Assembly (NCBI RefSeq): GCF_035594765.1
Contig: NC_085842.1
Location: 103,330,782 to 103,394,781, forward strand
Direction: 5' to 3'
Source: Anolis carolinensis
Lineage: Eukaryota
Length of the DNA stretch: 64,000 nucleotides
Shown here: in pieces, positions 3,130 through 33,490 of the stretch
Numbering within the stretch: position 1 is the first letter of the stretch
Layout of the letters: every line of letters begins with the position of its first letter
Program-made: the position numbers and the translations under genes
Notes under the pieces: model-generated
Database searches by the model: none
Seen by the model: the letters and a program-made list of their open reading frames with translations, nothing else
Told to the model about the DNA's origin: nothing

Positions 3130-3718
3130 GTTCCTGGTCTCAAAGCGTACTTGTCTTTTATGTGACTCTGTGTGGTAGGACCTGGATGTCCAAGTGTATA
3201 TCCTATTATTTTCATAGTCTGTCTTGTCCCTGTTAAATTTTTTTCAACTTGAAATCCTTAACTTGTGAGTACAGTTCCTTACATTTCCGTTCAATCTCTC
3301 CAAGATGGGTTTGGAGAGACTGCTCCTTATTTATATCCTCCAGAAGGGAGGTTGCTTTCTTTTCAAATTCTTCTGTCAGCGAATTGGTTTTTTGAATGAT
3401 TAATACCATTAAGTCCAGGGAACATTTGTTAAGAATAGCAGCCCAATTTTTCAAAAAAGTGTCATCATCCAGGAACATTCCTGGGGGTTTGTGCAATCTC
3501 AGTCCTCTTGGAATCATGTTGTTTTTAATGTAATCCGATAAAGTGGAAGCATGTAAATCAAGTCTTATAAGTTTCTTTTTGGTTTTCTCACATTCCAATA
3601 ACATATCCTGGGTCTGTGGGGACTGGACTTGGGTATCAGAGTCTAGTATAGATCTATCTTTGGTTAATTTAGTGATAAGTGTTGTTTCAAAGCTTAAAGT
3701 ACCCAGCCAGTCAGCCAT
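3130..3718 (-). pseudogene. N-terminal part of the Penelope-like ORF on the inverted arm, frameshifted
   Basis: ORF 3233-3718 has LSDYIKNNMIPRGLRL...W..ILNKCSLDLM, typical of vertebrate PLE N-termini. Removing one A from the A7 run near 3240 continues it as KKFNRDKTDYENNRIYTWTSRSYHTESHKRQVRF. Confidence 0.8.
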
Positions 3719-3763
3719 ACTGGTATGTCAAGTAAAACTAATATAACACAGAAACCTATATAT

Positions 3764-4195
3764 AGTGTAGAGAAAGGTTGTCCTGTTACACACAGTATAT
3801 AATAGAAACGAAGTAGCAAACGTATAATCACCAAGGCACATATATAAACTATTTTACAGCATTATATAAACTATTTCACAGCATTATAGCAAACATAGCA
3901 TTCATGTTTATATATTGCCAAAATAAAGGAGTTCATGAACTGAGGTTAAAACTCAGTATTCAGTGTTGTCTTGAAGCTTGGTAGAAAAAGCATCTCAATT
4001 GATGATCTTTATAAATGAGGGTTGTACCCTTTAAACAAATTATCAAAGTCCCAAGCAAGAAAGAGTCTTCAGAATGTACATTCAAAGAAAGCAACAGCAA
4101 AAAACAACAAGGGTTCCCGGGGTATTCTATGTCCTTGTTTCAGGATGGGTGTCCCTTCTTCAGGTTTAGTTGCTTCTTGTATAGTCTTCTGAAGA
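3764..4195 (-). repeat. Inverted pseudo-LTR copy (432 bp), pairs with 6727-7158
   Basis: Reverse complement of 6727-7158. Both ends sum to 10922, so no net indel. I saw one substitution, near 4186. Confidence 0.95.
4085..4178 (-). ncRNA. Type I hammerhead ribozyme motif (inverted pseudo-LTR copy)
   Basis: Reverse complement of the motif at 6744-6837. Confidence 0.75.
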
Positions 4196-4295
4196 CCTTA
4201 CCTCGTAGGTCTACAACCTTACCTCGTAGGTCTAACAGGACAAGAACCCGACAACAGTCGCACCATTTTTACAGAGGCCAGCACAAACAATATCC

Positions 4296-6492
4296 AACTT
4301 AGTAGTCAACCTGTCTGGCTATCCTTTATCCCCACAAGAAATTAAGATAATCAATAAAGGACTAAGCTTTGTCCCCACGCCTAAATTCAATTTATTTCAT
4401 ACCAAAGTAGAACTCTTTCATTTGTTTAGAACAATTAGACTTAGAGAATATTTTGGACCCAAGGGTAACACAGAATATACCACTCAATTTAAACCCAAAA
4501 GTAAATTCTTTCCCCATACAGACAATATAATGATTAGATCTTTTGAAAAGGTGGTAGAAAGAGATTTAGACATACTCTCCCGCACAAAAACCCATACACA
4601 TGTCAATATGACTTCAACAGAAATAAACACCATTAAAAGATTGGCTAACATGCCGGATTATATATGGAAACAAGCCGATAAGGGAGGTGCAATTGTGCTA
4701 TTAAACAGAAAAGACTATATAAATGAGGCAATGAGACACCTAGAAGATCAAGCTTTCTACAAACCTCTAAGTAAGGATCCTACAAATAAAATACGTAATT
4801 TAATTCGCATAGTCTGCACAGAAGGACTTTCCATGGGTTATATTTCAGAAAAGCAGTATGATTTTTTACAGAAACAAAATCCTAGGATCCCAGTCTTTTA
4901 TATTCTTCCAAAAATTCACAAAGGGGCTTTTCCTCCTCCAGGAAGACCAATAGTATCAGGTACATCCTCCATACTGGAACCCCTAGCACAATTTTTGGAC
5001 CATCATTTACAACCATTTGTCCCCCTCTCGCCATCATATATTAAAGATACCAAGCATTTCATCAATATCATAGAAACATTATCAATACCTCCACAAGCTG
5101 TACTTATGACATCTGACATCACCTCACTTTATACCAACATACCACTGGATGAAGCCAGAACAGTACTAAAAGAATTATTAGACACACGTGAATCCTCAAT
5201 ACCACCGACCCAATTTCTAATTGATCTTTTGGATATAGTTTTGGATTATAATTATTTTAGATTTGGTTCTCAGTTCTACTTACAAACATTTGGCGTCGCA
5301 ATGGGGAGCGCGTTAGCCCCCTCCCTGGCAAATCTCTATATCACTAATTTGGAACAAATGTGGATCTTGAATAGTACTAAGAACGAATTACTACATGATA
5401 TAATATATTATGGGAGATTCATAGACGACATTTTTTTAGTTTGTAATACAGAGGATACAGCCAGACAACTTAGCACTTGGCTAAATACTATACACAATAA
5501 CATAAAATTTACCAGTACCCACAGCCATATCAGTGTCAATTTTTTGGACGTCACAGTTTACAAAAAGGATAATAAACTGTTGGTCAAGAACTATAGAAAG
5601 CCTACAGACAAAAACTCTATTATGCATTACTCCAGCTTCCACCACCACAAGTTAAAAACCAACTTACCTTTTGCACAATTAATGAGATTAAAACACAACA
5701 CCAGTACACCTGAGGATTTCGTAGCAGAGGTATCTCTCTTCAGAGACCAATTTAACGAGAGAGGTTATCCTACAGGAATTCTAAACACTGCCATTAGGAA
5801 AGTAGAAACCATAGATAGAAGAAATTTACTGAAAGACCAAGTAAAGAAACACAATGACCGTATCATCTGGCCCTTAACTTTGACTCAGTTCACTCCAAAA
5901 ATTCACAAAATACTTAAGAAACATTGGCATCTTATTAGAGATATCCCTGGTTGCAAATACTTACCTATGATAGCTAATAAACGCTCAAGAAATCTTAAGG
6001 ATATGCTAATAAGCTCTGATTTAACAACATCTACTATCAAGAAATCTAACCTTAGAGGCCACTCAAACTGTGGACATTGTCAATGTTGCACACAGTCTCT
6101 CAGAACTAAACATTTTTTTACATCCAACTCTAAAAATCCAAATACTACGAAGTTTTACTACACGTATCACTGACCAGGTCATTTATGTTATACAGTGTCC
6201 CTGTGGACTTCTATATGTAGGCATGACCTCCAGATCATTAAAGATTAGAATACTTGAACACCGCTCACGCATCAAAAATAAATCATCAGAGTCTACCCTC
6301 TACTCTCATTTTTTAGAGAAATCCCACTCATATACCAGCTTTACTTTTTGTGCCTTAGAAAAGATCACCATAAAACCTCATGGTGATGTTAAAAGGGTTC
6401 TACTCCAGAGAGAAGCTTTCTGGATTTCCAAATTACAAACTATGCATCCACATGGTCTGAATGATAAATTAGATCTCTCTTGTTACCTGTGA
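4296..6492 (+). pseudogene. Penelope-like reverse transcriptase + GIY-YIG endonuclease, frameshifted near 6115
   Basis: Frame begins upstream of the listed ORF (NLVVNLSGYPLS...INKGLSFVPTP). RT motifs ADKGGAIV, PPGRPIVS, DITSLYTNIP, GVAMGSALAP, YGRFIDDIF. CGHCQCC linker typical of Neptune. After a T-run frameshift: VIYVIQCPCGLLYVGMT...R..EH...REAFWI..L.T..P.GLN. Confidence 0.93.
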
Positions 6493-6726
6493 ATTAGCTT
6501 TGCAATTAGCTCACAATCCTTAAAAGGGAGTAGCCCATATCAGTCAATTTGCTCGCTCTTGGAAAAAGAAAAAGTTGCTATCCTGAGCTGGAATTACAGC
6601 AGAGCCACTACCTAGAAAAGTGAAAGTAAGTTTTTTTGCAAATATCCTTAAATTTTGTTTCATGCTACTGGGTGCTGGTAACAGCAAATCTATTATATTG
6701 TCTCCTTATAATACAGTTTGTAAAAA

Positions 6727-7158
6727 TCTTCAGAATACTATACAAGAAGCAACTAAACCTGAAGAAGGGACACCCATCCTGAAACAAGGACATAGAATAC
6801 CCCGGGAACCCTTGTTGTTTTTTGCTGTTGCTTTCTTTGAATGTACATTCTGAAGACTCTTTCTTGCTTGGGACTTTGATAATTTGTTTAAAGGGTACAA
6901 CCCTCATTTATAAAGATCATCAATTGAGATGCTTTTTCTACCAAGCTTCAAGACAACACTGAATACTGAGTTTTAACCTCAGTTCATGAACTCCTTTATT
7001 TTGGCAATATATAAACATGAATGCTATGTTTGCTATAATGCTGTGAAATAGTTTATATAATGCTGTAAAATAGTTTATATATGTGCCTTGGTGATTATAC
7101 GTTTGCTACTTCGTTTCTATTATATACTGTGTGTAACAGGACAACCTTTCTCTACACT
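6727..7158 (+). repeat. 3' pseudo-LTR segment duplicated in inverted orientation at 3764-4195
   Basis: Direct sequence comparison; contains the hammerhead and a 22-bp tandem duplication (~7037-7080). Confidence 0.95.
6744..6837 (+). ncRNA. Type I hammerhead ribozyme motif
   Basis: Stem I AAAC(6755-58)/GTTT(6817-20), extendable by AAGAAGCAAC/GTTGC(T)TTCTT. CTGAAGA 6759-65. Stem II AGGG/TCCT. GAAA 6781-84. Stem III CAAGG/CCTTG. GUU triplet, predicted cut after 6816. PLE pseudo-LTRs are known to carry hammerheads. Confidence 0.78.
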
Positions 7159-7869
7159 GTTTTAAAGTATTCCAGACAGATTAAACAGCAACTACAAAGA
7201 GGAACTTATGCTTTGTGGCATAAATAACATATCACAGGTAGAATGGCAAGGAGGAGATCAGGACTCTATCTAAAGTTAGTCAGTGAGCCGAGTGCTTCAG
7301 GTAGCAAAAATGGAGTGTCATGGAAATGTAGTGCCTGAAAGAGAAGTGTAGGAGTGTGATCCTCAGAGCTTCTGGGACTTGTGGAATTATCTTTGTTGGG
7401 ACTCATCTATAATTTATCTACACAAAAATCCAGGGCCGATCTGGAGCACAAATGGTGGAGCTGTTCAAATGGTCCACCCCCAGCCAGCAGCATCTTCAGG
7501 AGCAGAGTCCAGATGGTCCAAAAACGGTTCAGCTCTGCTGTCACCCTTATCTGTCCTGTTGTTTCTATCAATGCAGTGGCTGCCTGCAGAGTTCAAGAGA
7601 GTTTCCAGTCACTTCCAGGTGCCTTTGCTGACATCAGCAAAAAAGGAGGAGGGGGACAAACTCCTTGGTTGCAAGGCTGCCATTGTTTGTGTCAGCAAAG
7701 GCACCCAGCAACAGCCAAGAGCTATCCAATTTTACTTCCACAGTGATGGGAACAACAGGACAAATAAGAGTGACAGTCCATTGGGCCAACGGAATTGTTT
7801 GAACTCCACTCCCACAGCTTCCGCAAGTGAGGAGTGGTGCACATAAACATGTTCATAATCTCTGAAGCA

Positions 7870-11444: not shown

Positions 11445-11800
11445 CTTAGAGAGCTGGGTATGTTTAGCCTGAAGAAGAGAAGGTTAAGAAGTGCCATGAT
11501 AGTCATGTTTACATATTTGATAGGATGCCATATTGAAAGGGAGCAGGCTTGTTTTCTGCTGTTTTAGAGAAAAGGACATGGAGCAGTGGATTCAAACTGA
11601 AGGAGAAGAAATTCCACCTAAACGTTAGGAACAACTTCCTGACAGAAACAGTTGTTCAACAGTGGAATATGCTGCCCAAAGTGTGGTGGACTCTCCTTCT
11701 TTGGAAGTTTTTAAACACAGGCTGGATGGCCATCTGTTGTATTCTGCTTGCCAGGGGTTTGGACTGGATAGCCCGTGTGGACTCTTCCAAATCTATGATT
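11445..11800 (+). mobile_element. CR1 LINE 3' fragment
   Basis: LRELGMFSLKKRRLR...FHLNVRNNFLT...QQWNMLP, followed by the 3' UTR. Confidence 0.82.
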
Positions 11801-12029
11801 ATAACTGAGCATTTCCTATTAGCAAAAGCTAATATTTTTGTTTGGTTTTGATAATACTTTAAACACCCCTTTAAACACCCCTTTATAATATGAATTGGGA
11901 GAACTTGATGGTTTAAAGATAAAAAAGGAAGTTGGCAGAAATTAGAGTAATCCATCTTTGCCATTCAATTCTGCTTTTAGTAAAATTCAAGTTTCTCTCA
12001 TTTCATGGACCAGCAGGTTAAGCTTTACA

Positions 12030-12230
12030 AAGAACTTCCTAGCTGTAAGAGGAGTTCAGCAGTGGAACTCTCTGCCTCAGAGTGTGGTGGAAGCTTTTTC
12101 CTTTGAGGCTTTTAAATAAAGGCTGGATGGCCATCTGTCAGGGATACTTTGATTGTGCTTCTCCTGCATGGCAGAGGATTGACTAGATGATCCATGTGGT
12201 CTCTTCCAACTCTATTAATCTATGATTCTG
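12030..12230 (+). mobile_element. CR1 LINE 3' fragment
   Basis: AGAACTTCCT...CAGTGGAACTCTCTGCC...GGTCTCTTCCAACTCTAT..CTATGATTCT. Confidence 0.8.
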
Positions 12231-32380: not shown

Positions 32381-33490
32381 GGGTTGTTGTATGTCTTTCG
32401 GGCTGTGTGGCCATGTTCCAGAAGTATTCTCTCCTGACATTTCACCTACATCTATGGCAAGCATCCTCAGAGGTTGTGTGGTATATTGGAAACTAAGTCA
32501 GTGAGGTTTATATATCTGTGGAAGATCCAGGGTGGGATAAAGAACCTTTGTCTGTTGGAGGCAGGTGTTGTTGTAATTAATCACCTTGATTAGCATTTGA
32601 TGGCCCTGTGGCCTCAAGGCTGGCTTCTTCCTGTCTGGGAGAATCCTTTGTTGGGAGGTGTTAGCTGTCCCTGATTGTTTCATGTCTGGAATTCCCCTGT
32701 TTTCTGAGTGTTGTTCTTTATTTACTGTTCTGATTTTAGAGTTTTTTTAAATACTGGTAGCCAGATTTTGTTCATTTTCATGGTTTCCTTCTTTCTGTTG
32801 AAATTGTCCACATTGCAGACATGAATCAATCAGGGCCAGCTAACAACTCCCAACAAAGGATTCCTCCAGGGAGGAATCAGCCAGGCCTTGAAGCGCAAGG
32901 CTTTTCAATGCTAATCAAAGTGATTAGTTGCAACATTGGCACTTGCCTCCAACAGACAAGAGTTCCTTCTCCCACCCTGGAACTTCCACAGATATATAAA
33001 TCCCACTTGCCTAGTTTCCAACAGACCTCACACTTCTGAGGATGCCTGCTATAGATGTGGGTGTTTCATATATTGCATTGCTTTAGTTTTGAATAGACCT
33101 CACAACAGTTGAGGATTTTTTGTGTGTCAGGAGTGACTTGAGAAACTGCAAATCCTTTCTGGTATGAGGGAATTAGTAGTCTGCAAGGATGTGGCACAGG
33201 GGACGCCCAGATGTTTTGATGTTTTTACCATCCGTGTGGGAGGCTTCTCTCATGTCCCCGTTTGGAGCTGGAGCTGATAAAGGGAGCTCATCCATGCTCT
33301 CCTCGGGTTGGATTCAAACAGGCAACCTTCAAGTCAGAAACCGAACCATTAGCAACCCATCAGTCCTGCCAGCACAAGGGTTTAACCCACTGCGCCAACA
33401 GGGGTCTCCCTGCCGTAGATGTGGGTGAAATGTCAGGAGAGAATGCTTCTGGAGCATGGCCATACAGCCCAGAAGACTCAGTGCAACCCA
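32381..33490. mobile_element. Head-to-head Penelope (Poseidon-like) 3' fragments with minimal hammerhead remnants
   Basis: 32381-32815 (minus) and 32816-33490 (plus) are the same family as 47231-48380. Hammerhead remnants at 32433-32473 (-), ~33033-33062 (+, partial) and one split by a SINE. Confidence 0.75.
33116..33409 (-). mobile_element. tRNA-headed Vingi-derived SINE
   Basis: Reverse complement matches 7870-8130 and 513-723; keeps GTCCCCT as the P1 3' strand. Confidence 0.82.

Follow-up and report, generated by a model that had tools for sequence, protein, structure and literature searches.

The hammerhead motif studied here lies in a 64-kb stretch of green anole (Anolis carolinensis) DNA, hereafter the window, and we read it, with a probability of about 0.7, as a terminal-repeat hammerhead belonging to a Neptune-like Penelope element. 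In this reading, selection maintains the three-helix fold of the motif, its form is common to lizard and gecko elements, and its cutting would probably depend on a dimer or a protein. As judged from comparison with related sequences, it is confirmed as a genuine, non-chance hammerhead motif of a Penelope-like element. The identification as a hammerhead is carried by the intact core, by the position of the motif in the element, by homologous motifs in related elements and by the covariation of their stems.

The features of the motif and of its host element are collected in Table 1. A reading made earlier from the letters of the window alone (hereafter the sequence-only reading) had proposed a complete type I hammerhead with CUGAAGA, GAAA, GUU and three stems, and both the coordinates and the sequence match this description. 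All type I invariants are present (C3 U4 G5 A6 N7 G8 A9, G12 A13 A14, the A15.1-U16.1 pair and a base other than G at position 17), with A6784-U6815 as the A15.1-U16.1 pair. By descriptor, stems I, II and III measure 4, 4 and 6 bp, respectively, and helix I is open. The traits that had been singled out as unusual, i.e. the 6-bp stem III, the CCCGGG in its loop, the bulged and extended stem I and the GUU triplet (U17), are each real in the window sequence; GUU is rare among cleavage triplets. An extra A follows A9 (A6766, for which pairing with U6780 is also possible), and the 10.1-11.1 pair is A-U (or G.U), against the usual G-C. The motif had also been described as present on both strands, which is true in the sense that identical copies occupy two sites in inverted orientation, about 2.5 kb apart, and not in the sense of one locus read in both directions. 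An extended outer stem (6727-6735/6849-6857) was predicted in the window and absent from the prediction for L001, a related anole family, and was dropped.

Table 1. Coordinates of the hammerhead motif and of its host element in the window
Feature	Position	Strand	Remarks
N-terminal ORF	3233..3718	-	161 aa; 56 % identity to the N-terminus of L001; past a frameshift continues to ~3142
Inverted arm copy	3764..4195	-	Followed by the N-terminal ORF on the - strand
Second hammerhead copy, inverted	4085..4178	-	Sequence identical; core 4163-4157; predicted cut 4106/4105
Reverse transcriptase (RT) ORF	4422..6173	+	Pfam RVT_1; frame open upstream to ~4196
GIY-YIG endonuclease ORF	6070..6492	+	Pfam match; frame differs from that of the RT ORF
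Downstream terminal repeat arm (pseudo-LTR part)	6727..7158	+	Stops 45 nt short of the start-codon position
Hammerhead, + copy	6744..6837	+	94 bases; core, three stems, predicted cut 6816/6817
Stem I, distal 5' strand	6744-6753	+	
Bulged U in stem I	6754	+	
Stem I, proximal 5' strand	6755-6758	+	AAAC
Core	6759-6765	+	CUGAAGA
Stem II	6766-6769 with 6777-6780	+	AGGG with UCCU; loop 6770-6776 (7 nt)
GAA	6781-6783	+	
Stem III	6784-6789 with 6810-6815	+	ACAAGG with CCUUGU; 6 bp
Stem III loop	6790-6809	+	20 nt
Palindrome in stem III loop	6801..6806	+	CCCGGG
U17	6816	+	Predicted cut between 6816 and 6817
Stem I, proximal 3' strand	6817-6820	+	GUUU
Stem I internal loop	6821-6826	+	
Stem I, distal 3' strand	6827-6837	+	

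The two hammerheads sit in a 432-nt inverted repeat whose arms (3764-4195 with 6727-7158) are identical at 431 of 432 bases, the sole mismatch (4186/6736) falling outside the motif. Within the downstream arm, the + copy lies 267 nt past the GIY-YIG stop. The host element has the Neptune layout, i.e. an RT followed by a C-terminal GIY-YIG domain (RVT_1 and GIY-YIG Pfam matches), and its RT-to-endonuclease linker bears CGHCQCC, the C columns of which are conserved in the protein alignment. A Cys motif CX2-5CxxC in this linker has been reported for Neptune and is shared with Nematis (PMC8557442); the host is most safely worded as a Neptune-like Penelope element. The RVT_1 and GIY-YIG matches, the arm at 6727-7158 and the Neptune/Nematis-type Cys motif bear out the original proposal that the hammerhead belongs to a Penelope-like element and sits in its terminal repeat. 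The proteins nearest to the host element are all from Anolis carolinensis, and two closer copies of the window's own family, P0001 and P0002, show 98 % and 83 % identity, respectively.

Positions 3142-7158 consist of an inverted piece (4195 to ~3142) and a direct piece (4196-7158), which together make approximately one full unit plus a terminal repeat, with only ~20-25 codons absent at their join. This arrangement looks like a twin-priming-type 5' inversion of a single insertion whose template RNA still had its two hammerheads uncut. A 21-nt tandem duplication (4203-4244, + strand, unit starting ACCTTACCTCG) lies exactly at the inversion junction. The copy carries at least two frameshifts (6070-6173 and ~3233-3245), yet its repeat arms are 99.8 % identical; the stop of the N-terminal ORF falls in an A-run (TTGAAAAAAATTTAA), and homology to L001 goes on in another frame. 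Inverted arrangements, a published trait of Penelope-like elements (PMC8557442), were seen again in L001, L003, L005, L007, L094 and L095. The insertion is flanked by a SINE-like repeat in four copies (1343-1495, 2709-2862, 11677-11811 and 12078-12230; 66-85 % identical) that ends in CTCTTCCAACTCTATGATT.

It had been suggested that cleavage would define both the 3' end of one unit and the 5' end of the next. The ends of the DNA copies speak against this: in the window, the predicted cut falls 90 nt downstream of the point where the inverted arm begins, the downstream repeat extends 342 nt past the cut, and none of the arms in L001, L003, L094 and L095 ends at the cut site, their distances from the motif being variable. 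Predicted cleavage therefore does not set the ends of integrated DNA, and the RNA template of the window insertion apparently contained two hammerheads that had not been cut. With copying from uncut RNA, any cleavage would serve another step (e.g. the processing of read-through transcripts) or would be inefficient.

A strict type I descriptor applied to both strands of the 64 kb gave two matches only, both of them the copies listed in Table 1. In 300 simulations of the window with a first-order Markov model, chance produced 0.007-0.06 matches per 64 kb, the value varying with stringency. This descriptor excluded an extra A before stem II, a 2-bp stem II and single core changes, and among relatives it matched in L001 only; the motifs of the other relatives were recovered with a relaxed descriptor combined with reading by eye, and evident false matches of the relaxed descriptor were found at 2237 and 20335 in the window and at 6222 and 7761 in L002. 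The window also holds, at 32470 on the - strand, a minimal hammerhead-like match (core CTGAGGA, a 6-bp stem II plus an extra base, GAAATGTC and a 3-bp stem I), which lies outside recognised Penelope ORFs and may be either a chance occurrence or a remnant of another element. The Rfam hammerhead search that the sequence-only reading had put forward came out negative, with no match of any hammerhead family at the gathering score or at E-values up to 10, whether the 64 kb, 301 nt or the 94 nt of the motif were searched. L007, a relative of canonical appearance, was likewise unmatched; because Rfam misses even this textbook-shaped motif, we regard its models as insensitive for this lineage and did not count the null result against the motif.

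DNA of relatives was taken around related RT genes and included other anole families (L001-L003, L009, L010 and L093-L095; 52-65 % protein identity), gecko loci (Paroedura picta L004-L006 and Eublepharis macularius L011) and loci from further assemblies (L007 and L008). In L001, L002, L004-L006, L008-L011 and L093-L095, a homologous motif was found beyond the endonuclease stop, at a distance of 200-900 nt; that of L007 lies in the inverted arm, and that of L003 is a minimal form. The motif was thus present in every squamate-type locus with enough flank, and L012, whose contig stops shortly after the ORF, had none. With the window, L001 and L009 as training sequences, a covariance model recovers the untrained L007 and L008 sites (E-values of ~2e-5 and ~4e-5, respectively), and a second-round model, run with filters off, recovers those of L002, L004, L010, L003 and L011 with E-values from 0.004 to 1.7, the weakest of which are insufficient alone. 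The sites found by the second model coincide exactly with the descriptor coordinates. Blastn of the non-coding tail against L001-L003 gave no match. By the Smith-Waterman method, the 666-nt non-coding tail scored 45 and 40 against the tails of L001 and L009 (shuffled maximum, 31; second-best, 25), and the hammerhead is the sole significant similarity between these tails and that of the window element.

For covariation, seven distinct sequences were aligned by fitting to the model; L011 and L003, which MAFFT misaligned, were left out. The proportion of paired cells was 86 %, versus 36-48 % when partners were slid; both sides had changed in 9 of the 14 pairs, and the observed covariation score was reached by none of 500 shuffles. 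Double changes affect all four pairs of stem I and three of the six pairs of stem III. Stem II is 62 % paired and is blurred by a one-base register shift due to the extra A, and the pairs A15.1-U16.1 and C15.2-G16.2 are retained in all seven sequences. A fitted alignment somewhat favours structure, and the same swaps are visible in the raw sequences, where the stem I strands beside the core read AAAC/GUUU, CUC/GAG, CAAC/GUUG, AUAUC/GAUAU, CCAG/CUGG and ACAACCA/UGGUUGU. On the two points for which an alignment had been advised, covariation and the base at position 17, stems I and III covary strongly in the seven sequences, and position 17 is U, A or C, and never G, across ten families.

Stem III forms a series among these relatives. 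In L003 it is reduced to a palindrome only, L007 has a 4-bp stem with a GGCC loop, and L010, L008, L004, L011, L009, L001 and the window have stems of 5-6 bp with loops of 6-20 nt. The loop palindromes are ACCGGU in L008, UCUAGA in Paroedura, GGCC in L007 and CCCGGG in three anole families, the last being kept in L001 and L009 although the remaining loop has diverged; in L010, L002 and L011 the loop palindrome is missing or short. The closed stem III, the palindrome and the non-G base at position 17 recur in relatives. All ten squamate-type families, and the majority of the metagenomic relatives, carry the extra A after the core. The pair next to GAAA is G-C in seven of ten relatives, and U occupies position 11.1 (A-U or G.U) in the window, L001 and Paroedura.

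Conservation of the catalytic parts is uneven. Every invariant core base is kept in the window, L001, L004, L007, L009 and L011, and well-formed homologues elsewhere carry core changes, namely U4A (L003:6685 and L010:7307), U4C (L002:6064) and A6U (L008:3030); the ORFs are intact in three of these four elements. Stem II measures 2-5 bp in relatives and is short in most of them, consisting of two A-U pairs only in the young copies of Paroedura. Six identical copies of the L001 family from three loci (L093:1799 and 5374, L094:2951 and 5374, L095:1547 and 5755) differ from L001 by one change in stem-loop II and by the loss of 2 nt from the 3' strand of stem I, which leaves a C.C mismatch; this deletion is the majority variant of the family and weakens stem I. 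Given the core changes, the weak stem II and the stem I deletion, catalysis may not be strictly maintained across relatives. In L094 and L095 the paired hammerhead copies are again inverted. L003 further contains perfect-hairpin repeats (656-755 and 7100-7180) with sub-threshold Rfam matches on both strands to lizard-type mir-5408, mir-3160 and mir-5429, which are probably palindromic repeat elements.

Farther from the window element, we scanned 80 metagenomic loci with distant Neptune-like RTs (31-39 % identity). Descriptor matches were obtained in 21 of the 80 (24 matches) and mostly correspond to the minimal form known from publications, in which stem II is long, A9 is followed by an extra A and a 4-8 nt palindrome (e.g. 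AUAU or ACCGGU) replaces stem III; the anole L003 motif is of this minimal form too (GAAACCGGUC). The signature described for Penelope hammerheads comprises an extra nucleotide, G10.1-C11.1 and a palindromic stem III position (PMC4209133). The metazoan minimal forms (Cervera and de la Pena 2014, PMC4209133) and the window motif are both of type I, reside in terminal repeats and share the extra nucleotide between A9 and 10.1, a stem III palindrome and a short core-side stem I. They differ in that stem III is absent or of 1-2 bp and stem II of 6-8 bp in the published forms, whereas the window motif has 6 bp and 4 bp, respectively; in the palindrome, which stands at the stem III position in the former and inside the 20-nt loop of a closed hairpin in the latter; and in the 10.1-11.1 pair (G-C versus A-U).

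Three further systems bear comparison. The Poseidon element of Anolis carolinensis (PAc) shares genome, superfamily and terminal-repeat location with the window element; its hammerhead needs the element's protein in order to cleave and is not required for insertion in vitro (Frangieh et al. 2024, PMC11167929), and the same study found no RNA-seq ends at the cut site. The window element belongs to a different clade, and its motif, with a full stem III, is located ~390 nt before the ATG. Type I hammerheads of newt and axolotl satellites and retrozymes are weak as monomers and active as dimers through a stem III palindrome and a long shared helix (PMC7229834), a behaviour that parallels the energetics computed for the window stem III; the window hairpin, in contrast, is closed, and the window repeats flank a 3-kb coding element. 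Fungal and protist Penelope-like elements lacking an endonuclease have a large helix III, and a single motif was active in one tested case (PMC4209133). These hammerheads resemble the window motif in being of type I, in Penelope terminal repeats and with a long stem III, a likeness of description; their hosts are telomere-associated, endonuclease-free and non-animal. In the papers compared, stem III is described as minimal or very short in animal endonuclease-bearing elements, and a large helix III is described for fungal and protist elements only.

Folding energies place the hammerhead of the window copy at a disadvantage. The hammerhead fold, at -9.2 or -11.9 kcal/mol versus a minimum of -17.4 or -22.4 kcal/mol, is less stable by 8-10 kcal/mol than a competing fold that joins the stem II 5' strand to the stem III 3' strand (AAGGG with CCCUU); under a folding constraint, the hammerhead structure is feasible. 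The hammerhead fold is the predicted minimum in L010, and in L001, L007 and L004 it misses the minimum by 1-2 kcal/mol at most. Nearest-neighbour models of this kind leave tertiary contacts out. Within 6766-6815, the strands of stems II and III can swap partners (AAGGG with CCCUU, UCCU with AGGA), which buries GAAA in a loop, and pairing of the stem II 3' strand with the stem III 5' strand looks possible by eye in several relatives.

For the stem III region, a duplex of two copies is computed at -19.9 kcal/mol, versus 2 x -4.4 kcal/mol for separate hairpins. The native loops of the window, L001, L009 and L008 rank in the top 2-6 % of shuffled loops for duplex promotion, and those of L004, L011 and L002 show no enrichment over shuffled loops; Fisher's combined p over independent lineages is ~0.04 (hand calculation). 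For the loop-loop dimerisation raised as possible by the sequence-only reading, the modelled pairing of two copies through the stem III region and its loop is thus only suggestive: the duplex is favoured and four families agree, and three do not.

The same reading had inferred that the ribozyme may cleave as a monomer, and the energy gap makes efficient monomer cleavage doubtful for the window copy. In this alternative, the 6-bp stem III would remove the need for a dimer and each copy would cut itself efficiently during transcription. Stem III is indeed a true hairpin, in which relatives show compensatory changes, tertiary contacts with loop II could come from the bulged extended stem I, stem II can form co-transcriptionally ahead of its competitor strand, and the relatives in which the hammerhead fold is minimal or nearly so fit the idea as well. 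We nevertheless consider such a self-sufficient monomer unlikely: besides the competing fold, the hairpin formed by stem III and its 20-nt loop contributes -4.4 kcal/mol only, the conserved loop palindrome would be without a role, and several relatives, like the window insertion, were copied from RNA uncut at this site.

Somewhat less probable still is that selection preserves an RNA structure no longer serving mainly as a ribozyme, i.e. a protein-binding or folding element, or a relic carried along. The U4A, U4C and A6U changes, some in elements with intact ORFs, and the very weak stem II of young Paroedura copies would fit this explanation, as would the other anole Penelope element, in which hammerhead mutants had no effect on insertion in vitro and RNA-seq revealed no cut ends (PMC11167929), and the Naiad elements, which thrive without hammerheads (PMC8557442). 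A mere hairpin scaffold, however, needs no such exact retention of catalytic positions as is seen in the six sequences with a full set of invariant core bases, in the constant exclusion of G from position 17 and in the A15.1-U16.1 and C15.2-G16.2 pairs of all seven counted sequences. As for chance agreement with the hammerhead consensus in AT-rich repeat DNA, the silence of Rfam and a free-energy z-score of merely -1.9 for the 94-mer could be cited in its favour, but the low number of expected matches, the location of the motif where it is expected in a Penelope element and the homologues at the equivalent position in nine related elements, with covariation, leave it effectively refuted on comparative grounds.

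We retain the reading of a terminal-repeat hammerhead whose cutting probably depends on a dimer or a protein. Going beyond the observed motif, its position, its homologues and their covariation, we infer that read-through transcripts of repeat-ORF-repeat or tandem copies would be cut after position 17 (6816/6817), giving a 2',3'-cyclic phosphate and a 5'-OH. The window copy would most likely cut slowly as a lone monomer, and cutting would probably need either the element's own protein or a second copy, the two copies being paired by way of the palindrome and the self-complementary stem III region around it; protein help is also possible for the window hammerhead because that of Poseidon is protein-dependent (PMC11167929). 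A more speculative and rather improbable extension is a switchable hammerhead in squamate Neptune-like elements, in which the ancestral palindrome for dimerisation would have been kept in the newly closed stem III loop. As long as a copy is alone, it would mostly escape cutting and provide a full-length template; cleavage would be triggered once the 5' and 3' copies of one transcript, or two transcripts, pair by a loop-loop contact or by an extended duplex of stem III, and the competing stem II/III fold would represent the off state.

A hammerhead in a Penelope terminal repeat is expected, and what this one adds is the closed stem III with its embedded palindrome, against published animal forms that are described as minimal and active only when paired. 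Rfam scans overlook this hammerhead lineage. Across ten lizard/gecko-type families, the motifs grade from the minimal form with a palindrome into a closed stem III of 4-6 bp with a loop palindrome, a series that provides a natural construct set for asking whether and how hammerheads that depend on dimers gain self-sufficiency. As copies are evidently being made from uncut RNA, this series could also reveal of what use the ribozyme is to the element.
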